The translations under genes were made by a program, and so were the position numbers. The notes below the pieces were generated by a model, which worked only from the letters and a program-made list of their open reading frames with translations, was not told where the DNA came from and did not search any database. From Gekko japonicus (taxonomy: Eukaryota), in NCBI RefSeq assembly GCF_001447785.1, contig NW_015164754.1:42749-106748 (forward strand): a stretch of DNA of 64,000 bases. The letters run 5' to 3'. Below, in pieces: positions 2,035 to 55,217 of the stretch (positions within the stretch are counted from its first letter, which is position 1; every line of letters starts with the position of its first letter).

Positions 2035-2329
2035 CTTCTCCGAGATGGGTCTTCGCCCAAGTTTTCCAGCCCGTGCAGCTGGTATTTGCGGAAGGCCAGA
2101 AGATCCACATCTCCTGCCACCAGAACGCCACGCCCCATAACACAATGTTTTGGTATCGACAACCACAGGAGAGTCGGCGGGCTTTAACCAGTCTAGGGAG
2201 TACGTACTCGGGCTCGATTTCTGCTGGAGAATTCCGCATGGACGTGAACACGGCATCGCGTTCTACCAACCTGACCAAAGAGAGAGCGGCAATGAGAGAC
2301 TCTGGCGTGTACTACTGCGCCGTGAGGGA
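2035..2329 (+). CDS. TRAV: T-cell receptor alpha variable gene segment, V exon (TRAV1/TRAV2-like); leader exon not found in window
   Basis: Pyrimidine tract plus cag acceptor at 2032-2034, then a phase-1 open frame: xSPRWVFAQVFQPVQLVFAEGQKIHISCHQNATPHNTMFWYRQ...AMRDSGVYYCAVR(D). First Cys, conserved Trp (WYRQ) and DxGxYYC motif are present, followed directly by an RSS. Confidence 0.93.
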
Positions 2330-2368
2330 CACAGTGAGAGGAAGACGGCAGCCAACAGTATGAAAACC
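2330..2368 (+). other. 23-bp-spacer recombination signal sequence (V-RSS)
   Basis: Heptamer CACAGTG at 2330-2336, 23-nt spacer, nonamer ATGAAAACC at 2360-2368 (7/9 match to ACAAAAACC). Confidence 0.92.
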
Positions 2369-3298
2369 ACCAACAGAGTTTCCTGCCGCCTTCATTCCTC
2401 TCCTCAGCCTGGTGGTTTCCTACTTTGCCCTTTCTCAACAACTATGTTTTGTAATTTCACATTTATTGGCTGGCCAAAGCATTCTGTGTAGCTATCCCTT
2501 TTCTTCTTGGACTATCAGACTCCAGTCCAGGGCTGGCTATCTGACACACAGATGGAGGACTTTTGTTCTGGGAGCTGTAGAGAGCAGCCACTTTTGAAAC
2601 TAGAACCTCACCTCAGTTCAGCTTCTTTTGTGGTCTGATTCACAGACACAAAAGCACACTCTGGGATACCTCACTGGTGAAGTACCCACGTTCTGCTCAA
2701 CATATGAAGCACTGGTCGTAAACCTCTAGGTGGGGCCTGGAGATCCCCTGGAATTACAAGTCATCTCCACACTACAGAGATCCACCCCCCTGGAGGATAT
2801 AGCAGCTTTGGAGGGCAGACTCTATGGTATACCATAGAGTCTGGGAGAAACAGCAGCCCTAGAGTGGCATTGCATCCCCAAACTCCCCTCTTGCCAGGCT
2901 CCACCCCAGCTCTCCAGGAATTTCCAAACCAACAGTTGGCAACCCCAAAACCACTAGTTGCAACCCTCCAGGTGGGGTCTAGAGTTCTTCTGGAACTGTC
3001 AATGATCTCCAAACTACAGGAACCTGTTCTCCCCGAGGAAATGGTAGCTTGGGGTGATGGTGGCAGACGCTATGGAAGCACATCCTTGTTGAGCTCTCCT
3101 GTCCCCAAACTCTGCCTTTCCCGCTCCCACCTTCAATCTCCAGGAATTTCCCAAGCAAGAGTTGGCATTCCTAACTGGACAGCATCGCATTTGAGCTGCA
3201 TGAGGGACCTAAGATGGCCCTCTCATATGTTCAACATTTGGTGTCGCAGTCCTGGCTGATGAACATGGCCTCTGGAATATCCTATCCTTTGTTTTTAA

Positions 3299-3594
3299 AG
3301 GTAAAGGTAAGGTTCCCTTGCTCGAAAGCCAGTCGAATCCGACTCTAGGGTTGCGGTGCTCATCTCCGTTTCAAAGCCAAAAAGCCAGCATTGTCTGAAG
3401 ACATTTCCGTGGTCTTGTGGCCGGCATGACTAAACACCAAGGCACACAGAATGCTGTTACCTTCCCACTGAAGAGGTACCCTATTTGTGGACGCCGACCC
3501 GCCATGCAGCACACTCGGGTCTTGAACTGCTGAACTACTGACCTTCCACAGCCTGCAGTTCAGCGTCTTAACCACTTGAGCCATTGCAGCGCCT
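3299..3594 (-). mobile_element. Sauria-type SINE
   Basis: (aaaggt)n tail at the left end. Body is shared with copies at ~24100-24360, ~40130-40305 and ~53365-53697. Confidence 0.7.
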
Positions 3595-5285
3595 GTGTTT
3601 TTAGCTATTTGCAAAATGCATAGCATAGAATTGGTCAGAAGGCCATGGTTATAATGGGAATAAGATGGTGATAAAATGGAAAGGTTCAGTAAAATGGGAT
3701 TGTTCAAGGGGGCTCTTTTTATAAAATAAATAAGACTGTAGGTTTAGGGATAAATCCTAAGCAAGTCTACTTGGATACAAGTTCCATTTTATTCAATGAG
3801 GAAATTAGGATTGCATTCTGAATGTCTGGGGAAAAAATTAGACCGATTCCCCCTTTGGATTGTTTATTGGATCAATTATACTGTTTTTATTTCATTGTTC
3901 TCTAATTTTGTAATTCAGTGTTTACTGCACTGTCTGTTGTATGTGTTATTTCTCTATTGCATCGTTTTCTGATTCTGTAATCTGCCTTGAGGCTCAGTGA
4001 AAAAGATGGACTGCAAATAAAGTGAGTAAATAAATATTTTAATATTGTGGGAGGCTGAACACACATGACTTCCCTGTTGGCGTGGGGAAGCGTCCAGTAA
4101 CGACAAGTACTAGGTTGCTGGTGCAGACTATCTATAGTGGATTTATTTACACAGAATATACACAGTTCATTTAGCACTCTCCAACTCCAATATCACCATA
4201 CAATCCGGCAGAGTGCTCCGCAGCAAGGCATCCATAGAGTGAACACCTCTACAAGTACTATACAGACATATATACAGTGTCAGCACCAATCAGTGACCAG
4301 TGCTGACTCATGGTTGCATCATGCTGGCTGATGCAAGAGACATGCAATCTCTACCTGGTGACAGGGTCATATGATACATTTAGCTGTCACCCAGATCAGC
4401 ATGATCTTTACCACCTTGTCTCATAGACTGTCATCTTGTCCCATACCTTACAGTATACTGACATTCCCTAGAGTCCGTTTCCTAAATCTCCTCCACCCCA
4501 AAGCTGGCCCAAACACTGGAAGTTGTAAAACTGTCCTTGACGTAGTAAAAACACACCCAATTCAGGAGCTCGGCTGAAATAAGTGTATTAAGGCACAACA
4601 CTCAATATACACCAACAATGATGTTATATTTAAGCATGTGTGTTCTATGGCTTGTTGCCGTAATAAATGACTGACTGACTGACTGACTGACACCAACAAT
4701 GAATAAGTATATTGATGAATAACAATAGATAACCCAAACAAATCAAAAGGGACATATAGAAACATGGTGCCAGAAGAGTGGAGAGAGGAACTTTTTAAGC
4801 ATCTTTCGAGAAAGTATTTGAAACAAACCTGATCATGCATGTTAACATATACCAGGTGTGCAAGGCCGTGGCTAGGGTTGGGAGATACCTGGAGACTTGG
4901 GGGGTGGGGCCTCAGGACGGTGGGGTTTGGAGAAGGGACTTCAGTGGGGTAGAATGCCATAGAGTCCACCTTCCAGAGATTCCATTTTCTCTAGGTGAAC
5001 TGATCTCTGTTGCCTGGAAATCAGTTGTAATCCCAAGAGATCTCCAGCCGCCACCTGGGACTTCATAACCTTAGCTGTTGCTCTTATTACAACATCAGTC
5101 TTGAATCCTGACCTCGGCAAATGCTCCTTCCTCCACTTCTTATGGACTGCCAGTTGCACAGCAAAGATGTGATACCACCTTCATTTCTTCCTTAGCTGAG
5201 TTCCCCAATGCCTGGTTCACAGCGGACTTCCCAGCATCTATTGAGCCCCACGGTTCCACAGAATTAGGGAACACTCACTGAACAA

Positions 5286-5680
5286 CAGGGCTCTTTTTGT
5301 AGAAAAAGCCCAGCAGGAACTCATTAGCATAATAGGCCACACCCAACAGCAGGAACTCATTAGCATATTGGGCCACACCCCTGACAGCACAGCTCATTAG
5401 CACATTAGGCCGCATCCCCATGTTACCAGAAGTGTGGTCATCCAGCCACACCCACCTTTTGCTTCTCATTCTGTTGACCTTGTTTGTGGTCAAAACCCAG
5501 GGCTTTTTTGTAGCAGGAACTCCTCTGCATGTTAGGCCACACACCCCTAATGTAGCCAATCCTAATGAGTTTCTGCAGTTGGGTGTGGCCTATTATGCTA
5601 ATGAGTTCCTGCTGGGCGTGGTCAACTTGGGAGCCAGCCGGAACTCCGTTCCTGTGCGTTCCTGCCCAAAAATAGCCCTG
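5286..5680. mobile_element. hAT-like MITE (CAGGGCT-terminal family) carrying repeated CTCATTAG
   Basis: Termini cagggct and agccctg; perfect TSD ctgaacaa. Relatives at 45602-45956, ~51050-51501 and 56276-56483. Confidence 0.75.
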
Positions 5681-6099
5681 CTGAACAAGATCCATTTCAT
5701 TCATCGTCTTCGGGGTAAGATGACAGGATCCTCCGTGGTGTATCAGGACCAACTTAACTGGGCTGTGAGAAAATGCCTGGACTATGAACTATAAAGAGTT
5801 AAGGATGGAAACTGGTCATGGTTCAGCTCCCCTTACCTGTAAGGGAAGAGGATAAATGGGTCTCCGGGGTGGAGGGCATTCCAAAACTAAAGGGGCTACC
5901 ACAGAAAAAGCCCTGATTCTCCCAGATGTCAATTTTTCACCCAGTGGTGATGATGTATACCTGATTTGGTGTTAATTTCCATTTTAGAAAGGAACCATCG
6001 GAAATCTCCAAGCGTTCACAGACAGAAGGCATTTTATTCACTGTTTGCTGATGCAATCTGTCCAAAACTTTTACATGCAAAGAAAACTTTTTAAAAAGC

Positions 6100-6380
6100 A
6101 CACCACTCAAACATCCCCAACCCCCCTGGAGACTTAATTACCATGAGGTGCTTAGATCTTCAAAGAGCTTCCTTCTTTCAGTGTCTTACAAGACGTCACG
6201 CCAAGCAACTGCATCAAAAGTACCTAAGGCTATTTAAGAGAGGGAAGAATATCATCAAGTGATGACCCAGAATGATATTTACTGAGTGAACACCTCAAGA
6301 AGAATGTGTCAAGAAGAGCTATGAAGATGTCCTGAAAGTATTGTCATCATCTGCTGCTTCCTTGACCATGCCAGGTAATT
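6100..6380 (+). promoter_or_regulatory. Candidate promoter and non-coding first exon of the OR4E2-like gene
   Basis: O/E-like CCCCTGGAGA next to homeodomain TTAATTA (6123-6140), TATTTAA at 6231, donor cag|gtaatt at ~6374, and a matching acceptor tttag| ending at 11115 upstream of the ATG. Confidence 0.55.
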
Positions 6381-6586
6381 GAACTACCTTTCTAAGGGAA
6401 AAATGAGATATGTTTGAGATTTTCCAAACTTTCAATTTAGTCTGCTCATTGCTCTCCACTTCCCATTCTTGCGAACCCAAGTTCAAAGCATGGTGCCCTT
6501 GGTGGTTCCCTACAACACCCTGCTCATAATGAATGAGTCATTTGCAGAGACTGCAAAATGTTGCATGCATGATGGTGTGTTAGATG

Positions 6587-11150: not shown

Positions 11151-12086
11151 ATGGAAGGCTTGAATCACACCCGGGTGACCCATTTTGTGTTCTTGGGTCT
11201 GACGAGTAACCACAGGCTCGAGCTGGCCTTATTTGCCGTCTTCTGTGTCATGTACCTGCTCATCTTAGCGGGCAACCTCCTCATCATGGTGACGGTGGCT
11301 TCCGACCGCTGCCTCCACACCCCCATGTACTTCTTCCTGGGCAACCTCTCTTTCATCGACATCTGCCACTCCTCGGTCACTGCCCCCAAGATGCTCCTGG
11401 ACTTCCTGTCGTTCCAGAAGACCATCTCCTTCAACGGATGCATGGCACAGCTTTTCTTCCTCCACCTCTGCGCCTGCGCGGAGATCTTTCTCCTCACGAT
11501 CATGGCCTATGACCGCTACATCGCCATCTGCCACCCGCTACAATACATGTCCCTCATGAGCCTGAAGGTGTGTACCTGGCTGGTGGGCGCCCTTTGGGTG
11601 GGAGCGATGGTCCACTCTCTGGTGCAGACGGTCCTCACCATCCAACTCCCTTACTGTGGACCCAATGTATTAGACAGCTTTTTCTGTGATGTACTCCCAG
11701 TCATCAAGTTGGCCTGCACAGACACGTACTTGACAAGGGTTCTTATTGTGTCCAACAGTGGCATGATATCCCTGGTCTGTTTCTTGGCCTTACTGGTTTC
11801 CTATATAGTCATCCTGGTGTCACTAAGAGGGCAGACAGCTGAGGGGCGACGCAAGGCCCTCTCCACCTGTGCGGCCCACCTGCTTGTCGTGGCCTTGTTC
11901 CTGGGGCCTTGTATCTTTATCTACACCCGCCCTGCTGGCAGCTTCTCGGCGGATAAAGTGGTTGCCGTTTTCTACACGGTGGTGACTCCCGTGCTCAACC
12001 CGGTGATTTACACCCTGAGGAATGCCCAAATGAAGAACTCCATGAAGAAGCTGAGAGACCAGAAGATCTTTTTCATTGGGACATGA
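11151..12086 (+). CDS. OR4E2: Class II olfactory receptor, OR4E2-like (mouse MOR83/MOR244-3 type)
   Basis: Intact single-exon 311 aa with LHTPMYFFL, MAYDRYIAIC, KALSTC and PVLNPVIY. N-terminus LNHTRVT.FVFLGLT, GPCIFIYTRP and C-terminal ..FF match recalled OR4E2. Confidence 0.9.
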   Translation: MEGLNHTRVTHFVFLGLTSNHRLELALFAVFCVMYLLILAGNLLIMVTVASDRCLHTPMYFFLGNLSFIDICHSSVTAPKMLLDFLSFQKTISFNGCMAQLFFLHLCACAEIFLLTIMAYDRYIAICHPLQYMSLMSLKVCTWLVGALWVGAMVHSLVQTVLTIQLPYCGPNVLDSFFCDVLPVIKLACTDTYLTRVLIVSNSGMISLVCFLALLVSYIVILVSLRGQTAEGRRKALSTCAAHLLVVALFLGPCIFIYTRPAGSFSADKVVAVFYTVVTPVLNPVIYTLRNAQMKNSMKKLRDQKIFFIGT

Positions 12087-14826: not shown

Positions 14827-14992
14827 GCAATCCACGTCAGGGTCATTCCCTACTACCTGATCCTTTTCACTGGAGACACAGGGGACTGAATCTAGGAGCT
14901 TCTTCTACTCTGAGATGTGTCTGATCCAAACTCACCACTGGATTCTGGTGTATTCCGGAATCCAGAGAAGGGGTCACAGTGTGGAGATTCAT

Positions 14993-16716: not shown

Positions 16717-17673
16717 CTAGAGGGAACATTGCCTACTATCTTTCCCTCCTGAAGTGACCTGTCGCCCTCGCAGTTTGTTCAGAGCATTCAGCATGTCCTC
16801 GTTGCGGAGGGTATAGATGATCGGGTTGAGCAGGGGAGTGACGGCCGTGAAGAAAACAGAAACTATCTTGTCTGCTGCCAGGCTCTTGGCTGGCCTGAGG
16901 TAGATGAAGATGCAGTGGCCCAGGAAGAAGGTCACGACGGTCAGGTGGGCAGCGCAAGTTGACAGAGCCTTCCGCCGTCCCTCAGAGAAGCGGTTCCGCA
17001 AGGAGACGAGGATGACCACGTAGGAGACCACCAGGACCACAAAGCAGACGACCGAGATCAGACCCGAGTTGGAGACGATGAGGATTTCGAAGACATAAGT
17101 GTCGGCGCAGGCCAGTTTGATGACCAAGGGCACATCGCAGAAGAAATTGTCGATGGCGTTGGGCCCGCAGTAAGGCAGGTTGAGCGTCAGAGCAGTCAGG
17201 GCGAGGGAATGGATCAACCCGCCCAACCACATGGCCACGGCCAACTGGAGGCAGACCTGGCGGCTCATGATGGTGGTGTAATGGAGGGGGTTGCATATGG
17301 CGGCGTAGCGGTCGTAAGCCATGATGGTGAGGAGGAAGATCTCCGTGCAGGCAAAGAGGTGGAGGAAGAACATCTGGGCTATGCATTCTCCAAAAGAGAT
17401 GGTCTTGGTCTCCGTCAGGAAGTCAGCGAGCATCTTGGGCATGACCACCGAGGAATGGCAGACGTCAATGAAGGAGAGGTTGCTGAGGAAGAAGTACATC
17501 GGGGTGTGGAGGTGATGGTCGTGGACGATCGTGACGACAATGAGGACGTTGCCGATGAGGATGGAGGTGTAGATGACGACGAAGAAAGCGAAGAGCGCCA
17601 GCTCGACGTTGTGGCTCGTGGTCAGGCCCGAGAGGATGAATGCTTTCACGGTGGTGACATTTCCAAGGATCAT
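16717..17673 (-). CDS. Class II olfactory receptor, OR4E1-like paralog
   Basis: 318 aa from MILGNVT (acceptor ...ttctttccag just upstream). All OR motifs intact; HLFACTEIF, SNSGLISVVCF and FLGHCIFIY are typical of OR4E1/MOR28. Confidence 0.88.
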   Translation of the reverse strand: MILGNVTTVKAFILSGLTTSHNVELALFAFFVVIYTSILIGNVLIVVTIVHDHHLHTPMYFFLSNLSFIDVCHSSVVMPKMLADFLTETKTISFGECIAQMFFLHLFACTEIFLLTIMAYDRYAAICNPLHYTTIMSRQVCLQLAVAMWLGGLIHSLALTALTLNLPYCGPNAIDNFFCDVPLVIKLACADTYVFEILIVSNSGLISVVCFVVLVVSYVVILVSLRNRFSEGRRKALSTCAAHLTVVTFFLGHCIFIYLRPAKSLAADKIVSVFFTAVTPLLNPIIYTLRNEDMLNALNKLRGRQVTSGGKDSRQCSL

Positions 17674-26322: not shown

Positions 26323-27288
26323 TCACTTCTTCTCCGAGTCCACCTTCCGACCAACCATTTTGTTGAGCGCTCGCTTCATATCCTCGTTCCGCAGTGTGTA
26401 GATAATGGGGTTGAGCAACGGGGTCACAGCCGTGAAGAAGACCGACACCACCTTGTCTTCCTTGAAGCTGGTGGAGGGGCGGGAGTAAATGAAAATGCAG
26501 TGCCCCAGGAAGAGAGTCACCACGGTGAGGTGTGCCGCGCAGGTAGAAAGAGCCTTGCGCCGGCCTTCGGCAAAACGGTTGCGGAGGGAGACCAAGATGA
26601 CACCGTATGAGACCACCAGCACCACAAAGCAGACCACGGAGATCAGCCCGGAGTTGGAAATGATAAGGACCTCGATGATGTAAGTGTCGGTGCACGCCAG
26701 CTTGATGACCGGAGGAACGTCGCAGAAGAAGTTGTCCACCTCCTGGGGGCCACAGTAGGGTAGCTTGATGGTCATGCCGATTAAGGCGAGGGAATGGACC
26801 GTACCACCTAGCCAGATCATTCCGGCCAACAGTAGGCAGACCTTGTGGCTCATGACGGTGAGGTAATGCATAGGATTGCAAATGGCCACGTAGCGGTCGT
26901 AGGCCATGACGGTGAGTAGGAAGATTTCGGTGCAGGCAAAGAGGTGAAGGAAGAACATCTGGGCCATGCAGCCTCCAAAGGAGATGTTCTTCTCGGCGGA
27001 GAGAAAGTCGGCCAGCATCTTGGGCACGGTCACTGTGGAGTGACAGATGTCAATGAAAGAGAGATTGCTCAGGAAGAAGTACATGGGCGTGTGGAGGGCT
27101 TGGTCGGGCACGATGGTGACCACGATGAGGAAGTTCCCGGCCAAAGTCAGTGCGTAGAGCACCAGAAAGACCACAAAGAGAACCAGCTGCATCTCGGGGT
27201 CGTTAGAGAGGCCCACCAGGATGAATTCGGTCACCAAGGACTGGTTTTGTGCTTCGGCAGTCCAGTTTGGAGTCACCTTTTCTTCCAT
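26323..27288 (-). CDS. OR4E1: Class II olfactory receptor, OR4E1-like (mouse MOR28/MOR10 type)
   Basis: Intact 321 aa. The C-terminal half (FLGHCIFIYSRPSTS..EDKVVSVFFTAVTPLLNPIIYTLRNEDMK.ALNK.VGRK) is nearly identical to recalled OR4E1. Acceptor tcttcttgtag ends 7 nt upstream of the ATG. Confidence 0.9.
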   Translation of the reverse strand: MEEKVTPNWTAEAQNQSLVTEFILVGLSNDPEMQLVLFVVFLVLYALTLAGNFLIVVTIVPDQALHTPMYFFLSNLSFIDICHSTVTVPKMLADFLSAEKNISFGGCMAQMFFLHLFACTEIFLLTVMAYDRYVAICNPMHYLTVMSHKVCLLLAGMIWLGGTVHSLALIGMTIKLPYCGPQEVDNFFCDVPPVIKLACTDTYIIEVLIISNSGLISVVCFVVLVVSYGVILVSLRNRFAEGRRKALSTCAAHLTVVTLFLGHCIFIYSRPSTSFKEDKVVSVFFTAVTPLLNPIIYTLRNEDMKRALNKMVGRKVDSEKK

Positions 27289-27493: not shown

Positions 27494-28536
27494 GCAGTGA
27501 AGTGGCTAAATTTGCAGATTACGCGAAGTTGCTCAGGGGGGTGAGAACCAGGGAGGATTGTGAGGTGCTCCAAAGGGATCTGTCGAGGATGGGTGAGTGG
27601 GTGTCAACGTGGCAAATGGGGTTCAATATGGCAAGGTGATGCACATCGGAGCCAAAAATCCTAACTATAAATACACTTCGATGGGGTCTGAACTGGCAGA
27701 GACTGACCAACAGAGAGATCTTGGAGTTGTAGTAGATAACTCAGTGAAAATGTCTAGACAGCGTGCGACTGCAATAAAAAAGGCCAACGCTATATTGGGG
27801 ATTATTAGGAAGGGAACTGAAAACAAATCAGCCAGTATCATCATGCCCCTATATAAATCAATGATGCAACCTCATTTGGAGTACTTTGTACAGTTCTGGT
27901 CACCACACCTCAAAAAGGATATTATAGCATTGGAAAAAGTGCAGAAAAGGGCAACTAAAATGATAAAAGGGTTGGAACACTTTCCCTATGAGGAAAGGTT
28001 AAGGCGCTTAGGGCTCTTTAGCTTGGAGAAACGACAACTGAGGGGTGACATGATCGAGGTTTATAAGATTATGCATGGGAAAGTGCAGGTAGAGAAAGAG
28101 GTACTTTTCTCCCTTTCTCACAATACAAGAACTCGTGGGCACTCCGTGAAATTGCTGAGCAGTCGGGTTAGAATGGATAAAAGGAAGTACTTCTTCACCC
28201 AAAGAGTGATTCACACATGGAATTCACTGCCACAGAAGGTGGTGGCGGCTACAAGCATGGACGGCTTCAAGAGGGAATTAGATAAGCATATGGAGCAGAG
28301 GTCCATCGGTGGCTATTAGCCACAAGGTATAGATAGGAACTCTCAGGTTGGGGCAAGGGATGCTCTGTATTCTTGGTGCTTGGGGGGGGGGTCAACAGTG
28401 GGAGGGCTTCTAGTGTCCTGGCCCAACTGCTGGACCACCTGATGGCACCTGGTATCTTTGGCCACTGTGTGACAGAGTGTTGGACTGGATGGGCCATTTG
28501 CCTGATCCAACATTGGCTTCTCTTATGTTCTTATGT
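27494..28536 (+). mobile_element. 5'-truncated CR1 LINE (C-terminal part of RT)
   Basis: KFADYAKL motif plus the CR1 ORF2 C-terminus (27597-28319), one frameshift, CR1 3' microsatellite. Confidence 0.92.
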
Positions 28537-34444: not shown

Positions 34445-36929
34445 TTTTTTTTTGGTAAACAAATTTTATTATTTTCTATACGAGTTTTACATTTAACCAT
34501 TTCCAATTTTCCATTGTTCACCCATACCCATTTCCTCCCCTCCCTCCTGTGGCTTCCCGCAATGCTTCCCCCTTACCCTCCACATTACTATATATCATCA
34601 ATTATATCATTTTTCTTATCATTACAGATTTAAGATAACATCATTTAACCTAATATTGATCTAAACACATTAAATTTTGTTTCACATCCCAGTTCTTCTC
34701 CAGATAAATTTTAAAGTAATTCCATTCTTCAAAAAATACCTCATCTTCTTTGCCGTTCAGCTTTTTTGTAATTTTGTCCATTTCAGCCATGAACCGAACT
34801 TTTTGTATCCAATCTTCAATCTCTGGTACTTTCTCTGTTTTCCAAAATTGTGCAAACAACATTCTCGCAGTTGTTATTAAGTACCAAAGTAAAGTCTTTT
34901 TAGTCGTGTTCACTTCATCTATTTTCAAACCCAAAAGCAGAATTTCGGGTGCTTTTTTAAAAGAGCATTTCAATATTTTTTGCATTTCATTGTGGACTTT
35001 TGTCCAAAAGTCTACAGCTTTTTCACAAGTCCACCACATATGATAAAATGAGCCCTCATGACTCTTGCATTTCCAACATTTGTTTGACATATTCTGGTTC
35101 ATATTTGCAATTTTCTTCGGAGTCATGTACCACCTGTACATCATTTTAAAGCAGTTCTCTCTGACATTGGTACAAGCCGATATCTTAATAGAGTTTTTCC
35201 ACAAATATTCCCAAGTTTCAATAGTCACCTCCCTATTCATATTTATTGCCCACTTTATCATTTGCTCTTTAACAATTTCATCTTCAGTATACCATTTCAA
35301 CAACAGTTTATACATTTTAGAGATATTTTTTCCCTCTCCACTTCCCCAAATATTTTCCATTTCATTTTTTTCTTCTCTAAAACCATAATTTTTNNNNNNN
35401 NNNNNNNNNNNNNNNNNNNNNNNNNNNNNNNNNNNNNNNNNNNNNNNNNNNNNNNNNNNNNNNNNNNNNNNNNNNNNNNNNNNNNNNNNNNNNNNNNNNN
35501 NNNNNNNNNNNNNNNNNNNNNNNNNNNNNNNNNNNNNNNNNNNNNNNNNNNNNNNNNNNNNNNNNNNNNNNNNNNNNNNNNNNNNNNNNNNNNNNNNNNN
35601 NNNNNNNNNNNNNNNNNNNNNNNNNNNNNNNNNNNNNNNNNNNNNNNNNNNNNNNNNNNNNNNNNNNNNNNNNNNNNNNNNNNNNNNNNNNNNNNNNNNN
35701 NNNNNNNNNNNNNNNNNNNNNNNNNNNNNNNNNNNNNNNNNNNNNNNNNNNNNNNNNNNNNNNNNNNNNNNNNNNNNNNNNNNNNNNNNNNNNNNNNNNN
35801 NNNNNNNNNNNNNNNNNNNNNNNNNNNNNNNNNNNNNNNNNNNNNNNNNNNNNNNNNNNNNNNNNNNNNNNNNNNNNNNNNNNNNNNNNNNNNNNNNNNN
35901 NNNNNNNNNNNNNNNNNNNNNNNNNNNNNNNNNNNNNNNNNNNNNNNNNNNNNNNNNNNNNNNNNNNNNNNNNNNNNNNNNNNNNNNNNNNNNNNNNNNN
36001 NNNNNNNNNNNNNNNNNNNNNNNNNNNNNNNNNNNNNNNNNNNNNNNNNNNNNNNNNNNNNNNNNNNNNNNNNNNNNNNNNNNNNNNNNNNNNNNNNNNN
36101 NNNNNNNNNNNNNNNNNNNNNNNNNNNNNNNNNNNNNNNNNNNNNNNNNNNNNNNNNNNNNNNNNNNNNNNNNNNNNNNNNNNNNNNNNNNNNNNNNNNN
36201 NNNNNNNNNNNNNNNNNNNNNNNNNNNNNNNNNNNNNNNNNNNNNNNNNNNNNNNNNNNNNNNNNNNNNNNNNNNNNNNNNNNNNNNNNNNNNNNNNNNN
36301 NNNNNNNNNNNNNNNNNNNNNNNNNNNNNNNNNNNNNNNNNNNNNNNNNNNNNNNNNNNNNNNNNNNNNNNNNAGATTGTCAAATGCCTTTTCGGCATCG
36401 ACAAATAAAAAAGCTACTTCTTGTTCTGGGTGTTTCTCGTAATATTCAATTGCATCCATTACTATTCTTACATTGTCTCGAATCTGTCTCTTTGGTAAAA
36501 AACCAGCTTGGTCTTCTGAGATCACTGTTTGTAAATAGTTTTTCACCCTATCTGCAATAACTTTTGCAAAAATCTTGTAGTCATTGTTCAAAAGAGAAAT
36601 TGGCCTATAATTCTTCACATTCGTTAGTTCTTGTCCTTCCTTTGGTATTAATGAAATAATTGCTTCCTTCCAAGAGTCCGGCACCTTCTTACTCTCACGT
36701 ATGTCGTTGGATAAAGCTTCCATGGCCGGAGCAATTTCTTCTTTCATTTTTTTATAAAACTTTGCAGTAAATCCATCCGGTCCTGGCGCCTTCCCCAACT
36801 TCGCATCTTCTATAGCCTTAATCACTTCTTCCTTTTGGATCCGACCATTTAATAAGTCTTTGTATTCGCTGCTTACTTTAGATAGTGGAGTTTCCTCTAG
36901 ATATTTTTTGATCTTCTCAAGATCAGCTC
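34445..36929 (-). mobile_element. Young 5'-truncated L1-clade LINE spanning an N gap
   Basis: RT motifs KAPGPDGF, NYRPISLLN.DYKI, DQAGF and DAEKAFD; C-terminal CWKC..H..W.C; poly(A) tail; 15-bp TSD gaacatttccctctt at 34430 and 36930. Confidence 0.93.
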
Positions 36930-37689
36930 GAACATTTCCCTCTTGAGAGTTCCAGCACCTCTTTCTCAAAAAAATAAAATAAAATAACAAGCCATGCGTT
37001 CGATCATTCACAGCCTCACTCAGGTTTTGCAAACTGAGAGCTGTGGCTTTCTTGATGGAGTCCATCCATCCAGGGGTCGTTTCGTAGAAAAAGAGCTAGG
37101 GGAACTCATTAGCATAACTCATTAGCATATGCCACACCCCCTGACATCAGGGGCCTGGCGGTGGACCTGCAAGGCTGGCGGGAGTACAAGGAAGCCCCGC
37201 GAAGGCCCTCCCTGGCCCCAGGCAGGCAGGGGTGGGGAGAGGCAGGGAGGAAGCAACTTACCCTCCCTCGTCTCCTGCCGCCTCCTGGCTGAATGAGGGC
37301 TGGAAGTGGGGCAGCCGGAAGCAGGGGGCGGGGCTTTGTCATGTGCCCCGCCCTCTGCACCTCACCCGGGGGAACTGCGTTCCCCTGTGATCCCCCCCGA
37401 AATGACCTCTGCATCCATCTCATGTTGGGTCTTCCTCTTTTCCTCCTGCCTTCAACTTTTCCTAGTATCATTTTTTACAGTGACTCTAATCTTCTCATGT
37501 TGTGACTAAAGCACAATCGCCTCAGTTTAGTCATTTTAGCTTCTAGGGAGAATTCAGGCTTAAGTTGAGCTAGAACCTACTTATTGATCTTTTTGGCAGT
37601 CCACAGTATCAGTAAAACTCTCCTCCAACATCACATTTCAAATAAATCATCCCCCCCCTTCACTGTCCAACTTTCACATTCCATATATA

Positions 37690-38170
37690 GTGACCAACAA
37701 AAGTCCGCATGGTCAAAGCAATGCTATTCCCAGTAGTCATGTATGGCTGCAAGAGTTGGACTATAAGGAAGGCCGAGCGCCGAAGAATAGATTCTTTTGA
37801 ACTATGGTGCTGGAGAAGACTCTTGAGAGTCCCTTGGACTGCAAGAAGATCCAATCAGTCAATCCTAAAAGAAATCAACCCTGACTGTTCCCTGGAAGGT
37901 CAGATAATGAAACTGAAGCTCAAATACTTTGGCCACCAAATGAGAAGGGAGCACTCCCTGGAGAAGACCCTGATGCTGGGAAAGATTGAAGGTCAAAGAA
38001 GACGGGGACAGCAAAGGATGAGATGGTTAGACAGTGTCATAGATGCAATGAACATGAAGTTGAGCAAACTTCAGAGGACGGCGGAAGACCGGAAGGCCTG
38101 GCGGGATCTGGTCCATGGGGTCGCAAAGAGTCGGACTCGACTGTGCGACTGAACAACCACAACCACAACA
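37690..38170 (+). mobile_element. BovB/RTE LINE 3' fragment
   Basis: FELWCWRRLLRVPWTARRSNQSILKEI motif and (caa/cca)n tail. Confidence 0.92.
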
Positions 38171-38555: not shown

Positions 38556-38610
38556 ATGGGCGCTTCTGTCTCTCTGACAGGGATGTTCTTCATTCTTCTC
38601 TTCATCCTTG
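38556..38610 (+). CDS. TRAV: Leader (L-PART1) exon of the second TRAV gene
   Basis: The 55-nt exon encodes the hydrophobic MGASVSLTGMFFILLFIL and ends in a consensus phase-1 donor G|gtgagt, in frame with the V exon at 40450. Confidence 0.85.
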
Positions 38611-39417: not shown

Positions 39418-40449
39418 GTATGCCTTGCATACGAAAGCTCATACCTCGAATTAAACTTTGTTGGTCTTAATGGTGCCACTGGACGCTAAATTCGTTCTTC
39501 TGCTTCAGACCAGCATGGCTGACCCCCTGGATCTATCGGTCTTGGGAAAGTCATCTGTCTTTCTCTAGGGGCAGTATTTCATACTGCTCTGGACAATGGG
39601 TTGGATCCAGCGGAAATAGCTGGCAGTGGGAGCGGAGAGTGAATCTTACTGGTTCCCGTCCCCTCCCGAAGACCTCCGATCTCTCCAATGCTGATTCGGG
39701 GGGGGGGGAGTGTCTCCCGTTCTCTGAACAGAATTTGGGGGGCATCCAGTTTGACCCCTCCAGTGCCTTGGTGTCGCTGCTTGTTCTTGACAGCAATGAT
39801 TAAATAGAAGAGAGGGGAAAATAACTTTGTAAGACCTGATGGATTGACGGATTAGTTCACAGTACAATCCAGTGCAGAGTGCCTCTAGCCTAAAGGTAAA
39901 GATAAAGGTTCCCTTGCTCGAAAGCCAGTCGTGTCCGACTCTAAGGTTGCGATCAGGCCAATGGCCCATCCAGTCCAACACTCTGTGTCACACAGTGGCC
40001 AAAAATACCAGGGGCCATCAGGAGGTCCAGCAGTGGGGCCAGGACACCAGAAGCCCTCCCACTGTTGCCCCCCCCAAGCACCAAGAAGACAGAGCATCAC
40101 TTGCCCCAGCCTGAGAATTCCTATCCATAGGTAAAGGTAAAGGTTCCCTTGCTCAAAAGCCAGTCGAGTCCGACTCTAGGGTTGCGGTGCTCATCTCCGT
40201 TTCAAAGCCGAAGAGCCAGCGCTGTCCGAAGACGTTTCTGTGGTCATGTGGCTGGCATGACTAAACACCAAGGCGCACGGAACGCTGTTCCCTTCCCACC
40301 GAAGCTAGGTTGGCAGGAGACCTCTAGCCTAAGTCTATTGAAATCATAGAGTAACCCTGCCTAGGCTTGCATAGTCAAGTTCTCCGCTCTTGTATGGTTC
40401 TTTGGTGTTCGACCTCTTTAACCTGGAGCCCCTCTCTATTCCCTACTAG

Positions 40450-40735
40450 CTCCAAGGGTTATCTTTGGCCAAGTGTTCCAACCCAAGCAACTCACCTATA
40501 CGGAGGGGGCCAAAGTCCTGATCCCATGCCATCAAAATGTCACCAGCCACAGCAATATGCATTGGTACGAGCAACACACCGGTGGTGTCCCATCTTGGCT
40601 GGGACAGGCCTATGAAGGCTTCTCTCCTGCTGGAGACTACCAGATGGAGGTGATCAAAACATCTCGCTCTACGAACCTCATCGTCGACGTGGCAAGACTG
40701 AGAGACGCCGGCGTCTACTTCTGTGCCGTGAGAGA
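40450..40735 (+). CDS. TRAV: T-cell receptor alpha variable gene segment, V exon (TRAV1/TRAV2-like), apparently functional
   Basis: Acceptor ctctctattccctactag|, then APRVIFGQVFQPKQLTYTEGAKVLIPCHQNVTSHSNMHWYEQHTGG...LRDAGVYFCAVR(D); Cys, Trp and Cys hallmarks intact. Confidence 0.94.
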
Positions 40736-40774
40736 CACAGCGAGAGGAAGCCAGCTGGCTTCAGCACAAAAAGC
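40736..40774 (+). other. 23-bp-spacer recombination signal sequence (V-RSS)
   Basis: CACAGCG at 40736-40742, 23-nt spacer, ACAAAAAGC at 40766-40774 (8/9 match). Confidence 0.93.
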
Positions 40775-40809
40775 ACCCAGCTTGTGGAGGAGGAGGAGGA
40801 GGAGATGCA

Positions 40810-41420
40810 GCGGGACAAAACCATCCAGTTCCTGGGATCCCAGATCACCGCAGACTGTGACAGCAGCCATGAAATTAAAAGACGCCTGCTCCTTGGGAGG
40901 AAAGCGATGGCGAACCTAAACAGCATGATAAAAAGTAGAGACATTACCCTGCCAACAAAAGTCCGTGTGGTCAAAGCAATGGTATTCCCAGTAGTCATGT
41001 ATGGCTGCGAGAGTTGGACTATAAGGAAGGCCGAGCACCGAAGAATAGATTCTTTTGAACTATGGTGCTGGAGAAGACTCTTGAGAGTCCCTTGGACTGC
41101 AAGAAGATCAAATCAGTCAATCCTAAAAGAAATCAACCCTGACTGTTCCCTGGAAGGCCAGATAATGAAACTGAAGCTCAAATACTTTGGCCACCCAATG
41201 AGAAGGGAGCACTCAATGGAGAAGACCCTGATGCTGGGAAAGATTGAAGATCAAAGAAGACGGGAACGGCAAAGGATGAGATGGTTAGACAGTGTGATAG
41301 ATGCAACGAACATGAAATTGAGCCAACTTCAGAGGACGGCGGAAGACCGGAAGGCCTGGCGTGATCTGGTCCATGGGGTCGCAAAGAGTCGGACTCGACT
41401 GTGCGACTGAACAACAAAAG
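40810..41420 (+). mobile_element. BovB/RTE LINE 3' fragment
   Basis: Uninterrupted ~200-aa BovB ORF C-terminus (RRLLLGRKAM..SRDITLPTKVR..VVMYGCESWT), with ctgaacaacaa tail. Confidence 0.93.
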
Positions 41421-42894
41421 CACCTTACAGACCAGCAAGACTTTCAAGGAATGAGCTTTCAAGAGTCAACAAGTCCCTTCATCAGATACGAGTAGGAAGA
41501 TCACCAGCCACCACCTGGAAGTTGGCAAGCCTGCCTGAACGTCTTGGTGGTCTCTAAGGTACTACTGGACTGGATAGCTGCTGCTGCAGACCAACATGGC
41601 TGCCCTATGAGATGATCTCCAGAAGGTACTCTGTGGTCTGAGAATGTTAGAATCATAGAGTTGGAAGGGGCCATACAGACCATCTAGTCCAGTGGTGGCG
41701 AACCTATGGCACGGGTGCCAGAGGTGGCACTCAGAGCCCTCTCTGTGGGCACGTGTGCCATCGCTCCAGCCAGGCCCAGACCATCATTAAAGTGTCGAAT
41801 TCTCTGCCAAATAATTTTAAGTAAATGAAAGCATTTGGGATTGCTTTCCTTACTTTGTTTGGATCATCTTAAGTTAATGTATGAGTTTGTTTTTTCTAAA
41901 GTAAAACCTCAGTATTCAGGTTAAATTGCCATGTTGGCACTTTGCGATAAATAAGTGGGTTTTTTGGGTGGCAGTTTGGGCACCCGGACTCTAAAAGGTT
42001 CGCCATCACTGATCTAGTCCAACCCCCTGCCCAATGCAGGACCAGCCTAAAGCACCCCTGACAAATATTCGTCCAGCCTCTTCTTGAAAGCTGTCAGTCA
42101 AGGGGAGCTCACCACCTCCCTAGGCAGCTGATTCCACCTTTGAACCACTCTGACCTTGAAAAAGTTTTTCCTACTATCCAGCCGATACCTCTCTGCATGT
42201 AATTTAAACCCGTTGCTTCGGGTCCTATCCAATGCTCCCTCTAAGCTATGGAGACTTGTGAGCAAAAAATCTACTTTGTGAGTTACCGGCATGAAAATTG
42301 TGAGCCAGCAATTTGGCTACTGCATAAATGAGTTTGCTCTGGAGCCCTCCTTCCTGAGCTAAGGCAAAAATATGTGAGCCAGAGGCTAAAAAACTGTGAG
42401 CTAGCTCACACTAACTCAGCTTAGAGGGAACACTGGTCCTCTCCTCTGCTGCCAACTGGAACAGCTCCTTGCCCTCCTCCAAATGACAGCCTTTCAAATA
42501 TTTAAAGAGAGCAATCCTGTCCCCCCCCATCTCCTCTTCTCCAAACTAAACATTCCCAAGGCCCTTAGCCTTTCCTCGTAGGGCTCAGTCTCATGTTGAG
42601 ACATGCTGAAGGAAAGGGGTCTTTTGGGGCCAGAACGCACTGGAGCACTGCTCCGGCAGCCCAGGAGCCAGTGCAAATGGTGGCGCCGCAAGCCCCACCC
42701 TGAGCTCCCCATGCCGAAGTGCTGGGGCCAGGGGAAGCCCAGAGAGCCCCGCCGCCAGGTCCCCCGGGCCTGCAAAGGAGCGCTGGGGCTGGGGGAAGCC
42801 CGGAGATCCCTGCAGTCGGGTCCGCCGGGCCCATGCTGAAGCGTAAGTAAGGGATCCGCGGGGGTGGTGGGGGCTTGATAGGGGGGTGGGAGAG

Positions 42895-43946: not shown

Positions 43947-44119
43947 CCGACGGTGACCTCTCAGGCCAAACCATTCAAGCTGGATTTTCAGCTCATGTGT
44001 GTATGTCTTGGTCTAGGAGGGTGTGCTCAGCATCACTAAGAGTACTAAGGCCATAGAAGAGGATTTCCACCATCTCCTGTTCATGCAGTGTAAGAGGACA
44101 CTTGTTTGGTCCACTGGTT

Positions 44120-46930: not shown

Positions 46931-47842
46931 ATGCCAAACCACACGGTGATCCTGGAATTCGTTCTCCTCGGGATCCCCCACACCGAAGGCCTCCAAAACA
47001 TCCTCTTTGCCGTCTTCTTGTCCTTCTACCTCTTCACTCTGCTCGGCAACCTGCTCATCCTCACGGCAATCGTCTGTGATGCCCGCCTCCACACGCCCAT
47101 GTACTGGTTCCTCTGCAATCTCTCTGTGGTAGACCTTGGCTTCTCCTCTGTCAGCACTCCCAAGCTCTTGGCCAACCTCTGGGCAGGGAGCAGAACTATC
47201 TCTTTGGGCGGGTGCATGTGCCAGGTCTTCTTCTACCACCTCTTGGGCAGCACCGAGTGCCTTCTGTACACCGTCATGGCCTACGATCGCTACGCCGCCA
47301 TCTGCCACCCGCTGAGGTACACGGTCATCATGAACCGGAAAGTGTGTGCCCTCTTGGCCGCTGGTACTTGGTTCACCAGTTCGTTCCATGCCACCATCTT
47401 AACCAGCTTGACCTTCACGCTCCCTTACTGTGGGTCCAACGTGGTGGACTATTTCTTGTGTGACATTTTCCCGGTAGTCAAGCTGGCTTGCGCTGACACC
47501 TACATCATTGAGACAGTGAGCTTCACCAACATCGGTGTGGTGCCCATGGTCTGCTTTGGACTCATCCTCATGTCCTACATCAGAATCGCCGTCTCCGTGC
47601 TCAGGATGCGCTCTGCGGAAAGCCGGCGCAAAGCAGCCTCCACTTGCGTGTCACATTTGACAGTTGTTTGCTTCTTCTTCGGGCCTTGCGCCCTCCTCTA
47701 CACCCAGCCATCTCTGAGTGACATATTAGCCACCCCGATCCAGATCTTCTGCAATGTTGTCACGCCCATGTTGAACCCAACTGTCTATACTCTGAGGAAC
47801 AAGGAGGTTCAGGCGGCATTCAGAAAGCTAAAAGGGGGTTAG
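46931..47842 (+). CDS. Class II olfactory receptor, family 10 (OR10D-like)
   Basis: Intact 303 aa: LLGIPHTEGL, LHTPMY, MAYDRYAAICHPLRY, LTSLTFTLPYCG, VSFTNIG, PMLNP. Confidence 0.88.
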   Translation: MPNHTVILEFVLLGIPHTEGLQNILFAVFLSFYLFTLLGNLLILTAIVCDARLHTPMYWFLCNLSVVDLGFSSVSTPKLLANLWAGSRTISLGGCMCQVFFYHLLGSTECLLYTVMAYDRYAAICHPLRYTVIMNRKVCALLAAGTWFTSSFHATILTSLTFTLPYCGSNVVDYFLCDIFPVVKLACADTYIIETVSFTNIGVVPMVCFGLILMSYIRIAVSVLRMRSAESRRKAASTCVSHLTVVCFFFGPCALLYTQPSLSDILATPIQIFCNVVTPMLNPTVYTLRNKEVQAAFRKLKGG

Positions 47843-50800: not shown

Positions 50801-53800
50801 CTGGCAATTAACCACCCCCCACCTGTTTCAGTCTCTATCTGAGGAAGAGTGTTTGCACATGAAAACTCATTATCTTGAATAAAACTTTGTTGGACTTCAA
50901 GGTGCCCCTGGACTCAAACTTTGTTTTGGATCTCCCAATGTTTTACTTTGAAGTGGCCGCCAGGGGCGCCAAAACTAATCAGAGTGACATGGTAGGAGAG
51001 AGGGTGTAATCACTCCCGCCAGACTGTTCACATGATCTAAGACGCATGTGACATTTTTTTTTGTAGAAAAAGCCCAGCAGGAACTCATTAGCATAATAGG
51101 CCACACCCGACAGCAGGAACTCATTAGCATATTAGGCTGCACCCCTGGCAGCACATCTTATTAGCTTATTAGGCCAAACCCCAAGCCTTCCCTTGGTTTG
51201 CCCAGGCAAGCTGGCCCTTGGAGGGGAGGGGAGGCAATTTAAACTGCCTTCCCTTGGCTTGCCTGTGGGGCACCTGGGCAAGCCGGCCCTTGGAAAGGCC
51301 GGGGAAGACTCTGAGTAAATGCCTCCCCAATCCTTCCAGGCCCCCCCGGCCCACCTAACTTGGAGTCGCTGGGTGGGGGGTCGCTCTCCAGGCCTTCCCC
51401 CTGTAGCCATGCATGCAGAGGTTTTGGCTGTAGTGGGCGTGGCCAACTCTGAAGCCAGCTGGAACTCCGTTCCTGTGTGTTCTTCCCCAAAAATAGCCCT
51501 GCGCACATCTCCCTTGAAGCTCCAACTCCTAGGGGGAAAAATATGGCTCCTTGAGGTGAAAACAAGACTGTCAGATCATTCTAGTTGTAAATCTCCCATG
51601 GCATGTTAGATGTAGTTTGGCCCAGAGTCTCAGTAGAGCACTTATGTGCACTTACCATTGGGGGAAAAAAATATACATGGGGGGGGGGGAAGGAGGAGGA
51701 GAATGGGAACATAGGGAGGGTGCAGCATCTTAAAGACAGAATAAGTAAACAGGACAGAAATAAATATCAGCAGAAATGTTGGCCTTCAGACCAAAAGATC
51801 TTTTAGCCTTTGTTCTCCCGCTTCTACTGCCATTAATGGTTCAGGGAAAGAAATCCCGCTTTAGCTGCCTTGATGGTTCTTCACTAAAAGTTGCTGGCAC
51901 GTCAATATTGTTTTGCTAAAACATCAAATGTTGAAGAGACGTACTGCAGGATGGCGAAGAGGTGACTGACCTCCCAGCAGCATCTGGATTCCAAGCTTCT
52001 GATAGAGAATCTGCTGAAAAGCAGGTACTACTTTTTATGTGACCGGAGTAGGTACTGGACAACAATCCTCCCTGTAGGTTGCGGAGTCTTGTTAGCAAAA
52101 ACTCTAGTTTGTGAGCTACTGGGCATTAAAGTTGTGAGCAAGCGAATTTGGCTACTGCATAAATGAGTTTGCTCTGGAGCCCTCCTTCCTGAGCGGAGAC
52201 AAAAGTTTGTGAGCTGGAGGCTAAAAGACTGTGAGCTACTGCACACTAACTCAGCTTTGAGGGAACGCTAGACACAGGACAGTCACCTACAATAAGTGGC
52301 ACGATAGGTACAGAGAGACATTTCCAGAGCCGATCATTTCACCTATGCCGGTCTGCAGTAGAAGAGCCTAGATTTGAGTTCAATAGCACCTTAGAGACCA
52401 ACAACATCTGGAAGGTATACGTTTTTGAACGTTCAGGCTCCCTGATGAAGGGTCTCTAGCAATGCTCCCTCTAAGCTGTGGAGTCTTGTGAGCAAAAATT
52501 CTCCTTTGTGAGCTCCTGGCATTAAAGTTGTGAGCCAGCGATTTGGCTCCCGCATAAATTAGTTTGCTCCGGAGCCACCCTTCCTGAGCTAAGACAAAAA
52601 TGTGTGAGTCGGAGGCTAAAAAACTGTGAGCTAGCTCACACTAACTCAGCTTAGAGGGAACACTGGTCTCTAGTATCTGAAGAAGGGCGATTTGACTTTC
52701 AAAGGCTTATATCCTAAACATCCTGATAATCTCTCAAGTGCTACTAGACTCAAATCTAGATTTTCGGAGCAGTTCCCCCTGCTTGCTTGATCGATTCGGC
52801 ACACTGGGCGAAAGTTCGCTTTGACTAGAGAGGTGACCACCTGGCAGCAGGGGCAGATCTACTATGAAACTAATGAAGCTTAAGCTTCAGGGCCCCTAAT
52901 CCTGGAAGGGCCCTGAAGGAATTTTTTTGTTTAATGAGTGAATTTTTGAACAAAATTGATGGAGGTTTTAAATGTGCTTGTTAATAAAATAAGACTATTA
53001 TAGTGACAGAATCATAAGCCAATGGGTTGAAGTAATTAATATTGACCGTAGCTTTGGTACTGAAAATGGATTTAAACTGGTTGAATGAAAATCTGGAAGG
53101 AGGTAAACAATGGACCTTTCAATATCGGGGTAGGGGGGACAGAGACTGTGGTGGGGGGAAACCCCTTTATGAGGAACTACTAGAAAGGAGATAGGAGGAA
53201 AGCCAGGGGTGGATTTTTAAGGAGAAAGACTGTACTCTCTGATTATACATCATGTCGGTCAAAGAAACTGAAGGTGGGAAGCTGTTGTCTAGTCTTTTCT
53301 AAGTTTGTGTATGGGGGGAGGGTATATCATCCATGACAGACAAAAGGATACATTTATCTACATAAAGTAAAGGTAAAGGTTCCCTTGCTCGCAAGCCAGT
53401 TGAATCCAACTCTAGGGTTGCGGTGCTCATCTCCATTTCATAGCCGAAGAGCCAGCGCTGTCTGAAGACGTTTCCGTGGTTGTGTGGCTGGCATGACTAA
53501 ACACCAAGGCGCACGGAACACTGTTACCTTCCCACCGAAGTGGTACCTATTTATCTACTTGCAATTTCTTGCTTTCGAACTGCTAGGTTGACGGGAGCTC
53601 ACTCCATCATGTGGCACCCGGGTCTCAAACTGCTCAACTACTGACCTTCCACAGCCTGCAGTTCAGCATCTTAACCACTTGAGCCACCGCAGCGCCTATC
53701 TACATAGCAAGTGCTTAAAATGTGGAATTAGCTGCCAGAGGATATTGTGATGGCCACAGGCCACAAAAGGGAATTGGATAGATTCATGGAGGACAGGACT

Positions 53801-54290
53801 ATCAGTGACTACTAGCCTTGGTGACTGAAGGCAACCTCCACATTCAGTGGTGGTCAACCTCTAGTTCAGTGCCAGAAGGAAACATTAGGGGAGGCCTCGG
53901 CATCTAGTCCCTGTCGTTGGACTCTCACAGTAAGGTGTTGGCCATGGTGTGAGACAGGATGGGCCACTGGTATGATCCAGCAGGGCTCTTCTTATGTTCT
54001 TATGTTCATTCAGCTGTATTGAAAAGATAGTTTGTCCATTGTCAGAAACATTTTTCTTCACATAATCCTTGAATGAGTCTTGGACATGAAGCTGGGTTGA
54101 AAAGCCTTGAATGCCACTTCTCTGTATTCTTAAATGAATGGGAAAAACCAGTAGACCTGGATTCAGGATGTCCCTCACAATGGTGCATTTCAAGGTTCTA
54201 ACATATCCACAGAAAATTGTATTTCTCAATTCCTCCATTTGTATTATTCCAATCATTTTTTCCCCCTTTGCAGGGCTCCGTAGTGCATCA

Positions 54291-55217
54291 ATGGAATGTG
54301 AAAACCAGTCTCTTTTGACTGACCTTATCCTCTTGGGCATCCCCTACCCTCAGGGATTTCATGTCCCTTTGTTTCTCTTCTTCCTGATCATCTACTTGCT
54401 GACCATCGTGGGGAATATCCTGGTCCTCTTGACTGTGGCCTCAGAACCTCAGCTGCATAAGCCCATGTATTGGTTTCTCTGTCATTTGTCCATTTTGGAC
54501 ATTGCAATGTCCACTGTGATAGTGCCCAAGGTGATCGCTGGATTTGTAGAAGGCGGTAAAGTCATCTCCTTTGGCAGTTGCAAGACTCAGCTCTTCTTCT
54601 ACCATTTCCTGGGCTCCACAGAGTGCTTCTTGTACACTGTGATGGCCTACGACCGCTTCCTGGCCATCTGCAGACCTCTCCATTATAATGCAGACATGAA
54701 CCACAGAGCATGCCTCTGCCTTTCCTTTGGTGCATGGTTTTGTGGCTGTGTGCATTCAGTCCTGGAAACAACCCTCACCTTCAGCTTGCCGTATGGCACG
54801 AAGAACCAAGTCAACTATATCTTCTGTGATATACCTGCCATGCTGAAGCTGGCCTGTGGAGACACAAAGTTCAATGAGATGTTTACCTTTGTAGATGTTG
54901 GTCTAGTGGCCATGATCTGTATCTTCTTGATACTGATGTCCTATATGTACATTGTTTCTACCATCCTGAGGATCCACTCGACGGAAGGGCGCCGTCGGGC
55001 GTTCTCCACATGTGCTGCTCATATCATTGTGGTGATGACGTGCTATGTGCCTCTGGCTTTCAACTACATGAGACCAGGGGCTCAAGATCTTCTGAGTAAA
55101 GTGGTAGCTATCTTCTACTCCACACTGACACCACTTCTAAACCCAGTCATATACACACTAAGGAACAAGGAGATGAAGGATGCTATGCTTAAACTTAGGG
55201 TAAAGAAACCACAGTGA
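54291..55217 (+). CDS. Class II olfactory receptor, OR10G-like
   Basis: 308 aa from MECENQS (acceptor tccccctttgcag| ending at 54273): GIPYP, FYHFLGSTECFLY, CDIPA.LKLAC, TFVDVG, EGRRRAFSTC. Confidence 0.88.
   Translation: MECENQSLLTDLILLGIPYPQGFHVPLFLFFLIIYLLTIVGNILVLLTVASEPQLHKPMYWFLCHLSILDIAMSTVIVPKVIAGFVEGGKVISFGSCKTQLFFYHFLGSTECFLYTVMAYDRFLAICRPLHYNADMNHRACLCLSFGAWFCGCVHSVLETTLTFSLPYGTKNQVNYIFCDIPAMLKLACGDTKFNEMFTFVDVGLVAMICIFLILMSYMYIVSTILRIHSTEGRRRAFSTCAAHIIVVMTCYVPLAFNYMRPGAQDLLSKVVAIFYSTLTPLLNPVIYTLRNKEMKDAMLKLRVKKPQ

Follow-up and report, generated by a model that had tools for sequence, protein, structure and literature searches.

How old is the interleaving of T cell receptor (TCR) alpha gene segments with olfactory receptor (OR) genes, and does anything beyond shared descent hold the two together? 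We approached this question in a 64-kb stretch of DNA from the gecko Gekko japonicus (64,000 nucleotides (nt); contig NW_015164754.1 of assembly GCF_001447785.1, forward strand, positions 42,749 to 106,748), hereafter called the window. Here, two germline variable (V) segments, V1 and V2, which belong to one old alpha/delta family, bracket a cluster of three OR4E genes (OR_A, OR_B and OR_C), and two family-10-like ORs (OR_D and OR_E) lie beyond V2. We consider it likely that the window is the V-distal (5′) end of the gecko TCR alpha (TRA) locus, with an OR4E block that has been kept since the amniote ancestor. The core of V, OR4E2, OR4E1 and V would then date back to the ancestor shared by mammals and reptiles, through plain retention of gene order.

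A sequence-only reading of this DNA had listed two V segments, each with a recombination signal sequence (RSS) of the 23-nt spacer type (23-RSS), and five ORs, with strands for the V segments and the three OR4E-like genes. Using Pfam and an RSS search, we recovered all of these elements where they had been placed. The features, in the order in which they occur along the window, are as follows:

2035-2329, plus strand: V exon of V1, TRAV/TRDV-type (Pfam V-set, E 7.6e-11)
2330-2368, plus strand: RSS of V1, with heptamer CACAGTG, a 23-nt spacer and nonamer ATGAAAACC
11151-12086, plus strand: OR_A, intact open reading frame (ORF) of 311 amino acids (aa), OR4E2 orthologue
16717-17673, minus strand: OR_B, intact ORF of 318 aa with its ATG at 17673, member of a third OR4E lineage
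26323-27288, minus strand: OR_C, intact ORF of 321 aa, OR4E1 orthologue
34650-37065, minus strand: ORF2 of an L1-type long interspersed nuclear element (LINE), holding an assembly gap (Pfam RVT_1 and L1 ORF2p matches)
38556-38610, plus strand: inferred leader exon of V2, 55 nt, with donor GTGAGT
40450-40735, plus strand: V exon of V2, TRAV/TRDV-type (Pfam V-set, E 5.5e-9)
40736-40774, plus strand: RSS of V2, with heptamer CACAGCG, a 23-nt spacer and nonamer ACAAAAAGC
46931-47842, plus strand: OR_D, intact ORF of 303 aa, family-10-like OR
54291-55217, plus strand: OR_E, intact ORF of 308 aa with its ATG at 54291, an OR outside OR4E

All five ORs matched Pfam 7tm_4, with E values from 1e-47 to 1e-50. 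For OR_B and OR_E, we set the start codon by exact look-up, which returned public proteins beginning only at ATG 17673 and ATG 54291, respectively. Beyond the listed features, a tblastn search of the window, queried with the V family, the ORs and a J-C region from Xenopus, returned no further V, joining (J), constant (C) or OR remnants. Four runs of N interrupt the window, at 202-357, 853-1027, 35394-36373 and 58385-59378.

We placed the OR4E genes by likelihood in a tree of 79 proteins for which OR_D and OR_E served as the root. Gecko OR4E2-like proteins share 91% identity with OR_A, turtle proteins 80%, and mammalian OR4E2/Olfr1509, mouse included, 70-72%. In the tree, the OR4E2 proteins of mammals (support 99) and of sauropsids (95) were joined into one clade with a value of 94 in the Shimodaira-Hasegawa-like approximate likelihood ratio test (SH-aLRT), and OR_A fell among the geckos. 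OR_C, in turn, matches a Gekko japonicus OR4E1-like protein at 100% identity, turtle and alligator proteins at 83-84% and mammalian OR4E1 at 73-76%, and it likewise fell among the geckos within an OR4E1 clade in which mammals (100) and sauropsids (98) were joined at an SH-aLRT of 87. As judged from these protein comparisons, OR_A is the one-to-one orthologue of OR4E2, and OR_C is an orthologue of OR4E1.

The middle gene of the cluster behaved differently from what had been proposed for it. The sequence-only reading had called the three genes OR4E2-like, OR4E1-like and OR4E1-like, which is correct in essence and holds for OR_A and OR_C as true orthologues, whereas OR_B is more than a simple copy of OR4E1 and fell into a separate, sauropsid-only clade. 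An exact match to the OR_B protein exists in the public collection, within a 90%-identity cluster that is named OR4E1-like. In the tree, its clade (SH-aLRT 99) comprised tuatara, turtles and squamates only and was sister to the OR4E1 clade (90), and a topology in which the OR_B clade arose from OR4E1 by duplication early in sauropsids was not rejected by the approximately unbiased (AU) test (p 0.42). We thus assign OR_B to an old and distinct third OR4E lineage that is restricted to sauropsids among the sampled proteins. Either this lineage was lost by mammals, or it originated early in sauropsids.

There were no birds among the best 120 relatives listed for OR4E2 or for OR4E1, alligator was among the listed matches for OR4E1 only, and tuatara was absent among the OR4E2 matches listed. 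The absence of birds from the listed OR4E matches seems to fit a loss of these ORs in birds. Within Gekko japonicus itself, a second OR4E1-like protein (P0422) is encoded on a separate contig of just 1135 bp and shares a 90% cluster with the OR_C orthologue of Heteronotia; a haplotype copy left unplaced, or else a recent duplicate, is the probable origin.

The two V segments carry the hallmarks of germline elements with their recombination signals in place. Searching the window for the RSS pattern with at most three mismatches, we obtained four matches where 0.69 were expected, and the two best of these coincide exactly with the ends of the V1 and V2 exons. The V1 signal has a perfect heptamer and two mismatches, both in the nonamer, and the V2 signal also has two mismatches in total, one in the heptamer and one in the nonamer. 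Counting from the Cys codon (at 2316 in V1 and at 40722 in V2), nucleotide 15 is the first of the heptamer in both segments, a position that one study reports to be typical of zebrafish TRAV (PMC10322711). Furthermore, both V exons are open, are preceded by a pyrimidine-rich splice acceptor and end in Cys-Ala-Val-Arg-Asp (CAVRD), and the first Cys, the Trp and the second Cys are invariant throughout the V family alignment, V1 and V2 included. For V2, the candidate leader exon encodes a hydrophobic 18-aa start and was top-ranked by hydrophobicity and phase among all ATG-to-GT candidates; the intron from this inferred leader to the V exon measures 1839 nt and carries transposon fragments. A scan for cAMP response elements (CREs) as part of V promoters gave a sole match in the window, immediately beyond the stop codon of OR_A, with none near the V segments.

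Transposon-derived sequence lies close to both V segments. Upstream of V1, fragments at 549-627 and 1028-1109 are about 90% identical to 39943-40125 in the V2 intron, on the opposite strand. Downstream of V2, a 208-aa ORF at 40784-41410, without a Pfam match, resembles the tail of a LINE ORF2 as well as a fragment at 37709-37754. As this LINE ORF2-like tail begins 10 nt past the V2 nonamer, a transposon would have landed directly beside the V2 RSS and left it undamaged.

We found the family to which V1 and V2 belong to be of the alpha/delta type. Relatives were collected in a full HMMER search of 1.8 billion representative sequences; a word-index search with the bare V2 exon had returned one candidate only and was uninformative on relatives, and it was with HMMER that the family was found. 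When V2 alone was compared with single V domains in the PDB, human TRAV1-2 alpha chains ranked at the top with 40-43 bits, against about 32 bits for beta chains, while V1 alone gave mixed matches (nanobodies at 35 bits, mouse V-beta 8 at 34 and alpha chains at 33). The profile of the whole V family, by contrast with V1 alone, ranked only TCR alpha chains among the single V domains (TRAV26, TRAV4, TRAV1-2 and others), with TRAV26 and TRAV4 preferred and beta chains absent among the best 60 PDB matches. The Atlas clusters nearest to the family are clusters of TCR-alpha V domains, and in a Xenopus model (P0137) a V of the same family is joined to a constant region that matches the human TCR delta constant region (E 5e-31). 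Because of the profile ranking, the Atlas neighbours and this V-C-delta model, we classify the V1/V2 family as alpha/delta-type (TRAV/TRDV) on the strength of its sequence relationships, in line with the claim of the sequence-only reading that these are TRA-type V segments. A TRB or immunoglobulin (Ig) identity of V1 and V2 was rejected on the same three lines of evidence.

Within the family, V1 and V2 are paralogues that share 48% protein identity; the TRAV1-2 best match belongs to V2 and not to V1. At the DNA level their V exons gave no nucleotide match, with transposon fragments as the only sequence shared, which fits an old duplication. The nearest relatives of the two are V genes of the lizard Phrynosoma (64% identity to V2) and of sea turtles (53%), followed by frogs at about 40%, and V1 is 54% identical to a turtle V. 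In the V tree, the frogs, the turtle V, V1 and the V2 clade formed one clade (support 95/89) that splits into the frogs on one side and V1, the turtle V and the V2 clade on the other; the V2 clade itself (96/96) includes V genes of Phrynosoma and Varanus. Because of this topology, we take the split between V1 and V2 to be older than the gecko lineage. The family, with its "QVFQP...CAVRD" sequence, is also present in Xenopus, Ascaphus, Leptobrachium and turtles, and its germline CAVRD end, read through the heptamer, recurs in V1 and V2. While the Xenopus member is modelled with C-delta, the gecko should pair its V segments with C-alpha only. According to the literature, TRD is absent from squamates (PMC11754216).

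Compared with the 5′ end of the human and mouse TRA/TRD locus, the gecko window presents a V, an OR4E2 orthologue, an OR4E1 orthologue and a V in the same order, and its V segments are likewise of the alpha/delta type with a 23-RSS. For the human strands on chromosome 14, we assume TRAV1-2(+), OR4E2(+), OR4E1(-) and TRAV2(+). The human order is OR10G3, TRAV1-1, OR10G2, TRAV1-2, OR4E2/OR4E1, TRAV2, and the mouse genes Olfr1509, Olfr1508 and Olfr1507 are the MOR83/MOR10/MOR28 cluster. Published maps place OR10G2 between TRAV1-1 and TRAV1-2 and OR4E2 between TRAV1-2 and TRAV2 in human, and Olfr1509, 1508 and 1507 between TRAV1 and TRAV2 in mouse (PMC4574546); the V, OR4E2, OR4E1, V order proposed for the gecko in the sequence-only reading agrees with these maps. 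According to IMGT, OR10G3 marks the 5′ border of the locus. The gecko differs from human and mouse in having an additional OR4E gene of a sauropsid-only lineage, OR_B, and in that both of its V segments come from a single family, as paralogues, rather than being clear counterparts of TRAV1 and TRAV2.

The arrangement as such has been described before. In opossum, mouse and human, "but not chicken", TRAV1 was found among ORs in the vicinity of METTL3 and SALL2 (Parra 2008, PMC2275272), and this study together with a later one (Parra 2012, PMC3457774) reported the interspersion of TRAV and OR genes in therians as well as synteny between ORs and TCRA/D in amphibians, birds and mammals. Opossum and platypus resemble the gecko in having OR genes with interspersed TRAV at the 5′ end of TCR alpha/delta (PMC2275272, PMC3457774). 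Because TRAV1/OR interleaving and a tetrapod-wide synteny of ORs with TCRA/D have already been published, the gecko locus is a further case of a known arrangement, and the novelty implied in the sequence-only reading narrows to a gene-level reptile example: the opossum and platypus papers came without gene-level OR orthology and without squamates (PMC2275272, PMC3457774), and OR orthology is what the gecko case supplies.

We further examined the neighbours of these genes in other reptiles by means of fused gene models (which provide order and strand), shared contigs and adjacent accessions, evidence that is indirect compared with a direct reading of the genomic context. The fused models join the following genes:

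Phrynosoma: V2 orthologue, then OR_E orthologue
Liasis: OR_D orthologue, then OR_E orthologue
Eublepharis: OR_C orthologue, then OR_B orthologue
Varanus komodoensis (P0335): V2-type V, then OR_C orthologue, on the same strand

In addition, Eublepharis and Heteronotia each carry orthologues of OR_C/OR_B and of OR_D with neighbouring accessions on one contig, and a single Phrynosoma contig carries the OR4E2, OR4E1-type and V/OR_E genes under locus tags 001074 to 001082. The accessions of OR4E2 and OR4E1 in the turtle Emydura directly follow one another, and both genes lie on a contig of 341 kb. By these measures, the gecko genes have the same neighbours in other squamates and in turtles.

Taken at the level of mechanism, the two gene systems would use the window in separate tissues. 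In thymocytes, RAG would join each V via its 23-RSS to a TRAJ segment, and the choice of ORs, one at a time, would take place in olfactory neurons. The V and OR systems share one interval, and the notion that they depend on each other has no support.

A number of observations weigh against reading the window as the 5′ end of TRA with a retained OR4E block. None of TRAJ, TRAC, SALL2 and METTL3 was found within the 64-kb window. The gecko family-10-like ORs lie downstream of V2, whereas the mammalian OR10G genes lie upstream of TRAV1. OR_C and V2 diverge in direction in the gecko, unlike in the same-strand fusion of Varanus, and because the Varanus orientation does not match that of the gecko, the block would have been rearranged at least once within squamates; the fusion suggests either an inversion in the monitor lineage or an additional V copy. 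Finally, we detected no credible ATG exon for a V1 leader in the readable 1 kb upstream (1028-2034), and assembly gaps lie upstream of V1 at 202-357 and 853-1027. As no leader exon of V1 could be identified, V1 could be a pseudogene, or an upstream gap could hide the leader. This bears on the explanation that at least one V segment is a relic, an orphan or pseudogene V exon left beside the ORs and no longer in use as a TCR gene, with which the missing V1 leader, the unusually long (1.84 kb) and transposon-filled V2 intron, the imperfect V2 heptamer and the LINE tail 10 nt past the V2 nonamer would all be compatible. We nevertheless regard relics as rather unlikely: both V exons are open, with Cys/Trp/Cys in place, a good splice acceptor each and an unchanged CAC in the heptamer; the V2 orthologues of Phrynosoma and Varanus are intact; the nearest relative of V1 is an intact turtle V; and the gaps upstream of V1 could well conceal its leader. 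It is highly improbable that the V segments come from a TRB, TRG or Ig locus, or that their juxtaposition with the ORs is an assembly misjoin at a gap. The mixed PDB matches of V1 alone and the presence of an assembly gap between OR_C and V2 would speak for such an origin, but the family profile with its ranking of alpha chains only and the Xenopus member joined to C-delta argue against another receptor locus, and independent squamate assemblies put a V2-type V beside orthologues of OR_C and OR_E and hold the orthologues of OR_C, OR_B and OR_D together. The gap itself (35394-36373), moreover, touches neither OR nor V genes. On the minus strand, its right flank matches residues 421-606 of L1 ORF2p, with Pfam RVT_1 positions 1-81 ending at the gap edge, and its left flank, on the minus strand too, matches residues 1049-1231; because the two flanks are colinear and on the same strand, the gap lies inside a single L1 copy. 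If that copy is whole, about 420 codons (about 1.26 kb) are missing where 980 N are written. A misjoin at this gap was rejected on the colinear L1 ORF2 flanks and on the gene neighbours in other species.

A different kind of alternative accepts the 5′ TRA identity of the window and asks why the genes have stayed together. As the sequence-only reading suggests, selection may have kept the interleaving, with the OR cluster and the V genes sharing a regulatory architecture (boundary elements, a long-range OR enhancer similar to the mouse H element) such that breaks are harmful. The V, OR4E2, OR4E1, V order common to gecko and mammals would agree with this, as would the unusual conservation of the ORs (gecko and mammalian proteins are 70-76% identical, and OR_D has a 90% cluster that extends across squamates). 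We consider selection of this kind unlikely. No regulatory element was identified in the window, and scans for O/E sites and for homeodomain-O/E composites found nothing above chance, although the patterns were crude and the blank result does not speak for absence. The block is not rigid, given the family-10-like ORs on the other side and the differing orientation in Varanus; birds appear to be without these ORs (none among the listed matches, and "not chicken" in PMC2275272); in newts, TRA has relocated away from the syntenic block (PMC12698447); and many gene neighbourhoods last 300 million years (My) without constraint. A further-reaching proposal, decidedly unlikely in our assessment, is that a tetrapod-wide V lineage with a fixed CAVRD end has been held for more than 300 My at the OR4E boundary, with V1 and V2 as its survivors, and that OR-choice elements and the 5′ boundary of the TCR alpha recombination domain are mutually constrained as one regulatory unit, which would keep either gene set from leaving. 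Ordinary retention of microsynteny accounts for the data equally as well as regulatory constraint does. With gene-order retention as the preferred reading, the first amniotes probably already had the OR4E2/OR4E1 pair alongside its flanking alpha-type V genes.

The gecko locus by itself thus represents conserved synteny and not a new mechanism. What is new here is the orthology of single genes and a sauropsid example for a layout that had been documented in mammals and stated broadly for other tetrapods. For comparative immunology, the OR4E block serves as a fixed point of reference at the 5′ end of TRA loci in reptiles, and for olfaction research, it provides non-mammalian counterparts of the MOR28-cluster genes. 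If the two gene-choice systems do interact, the interval from OR4E1 to the downstream V is where a conserved non-coding element would be sought.

Of the two ORs beyond V2, OR_D belongs to a 90%-identity cluster of 33 squamate proteins that carry the source names 958-like, 10D3-like, 10D4 and 10G6-like. The label OR10D-like, given to this gene in the sequence-only reading, finds an echo in the names 10D3-like and 10D4 and is an assignment by names only; an Atlas search with OR_D returned generic OR clusters only and was uninformative on the subfamily. OR_D shares 47% identity with OR_E and 49% with the OR4E genes, and for OR_E, the exact protein from ATG 54291 is present in the public collection. 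For an OR, OR_D is unusually conserved, as its 90% cluster spans snakes, lacertids, skinks, cordylids, anguids and geckos. Elsewhere in the window, just upstream of the OR_C start, a 240-aa ORF on the plus strand (27597-28319), without a Pfam match, is probably a transposon remnant.

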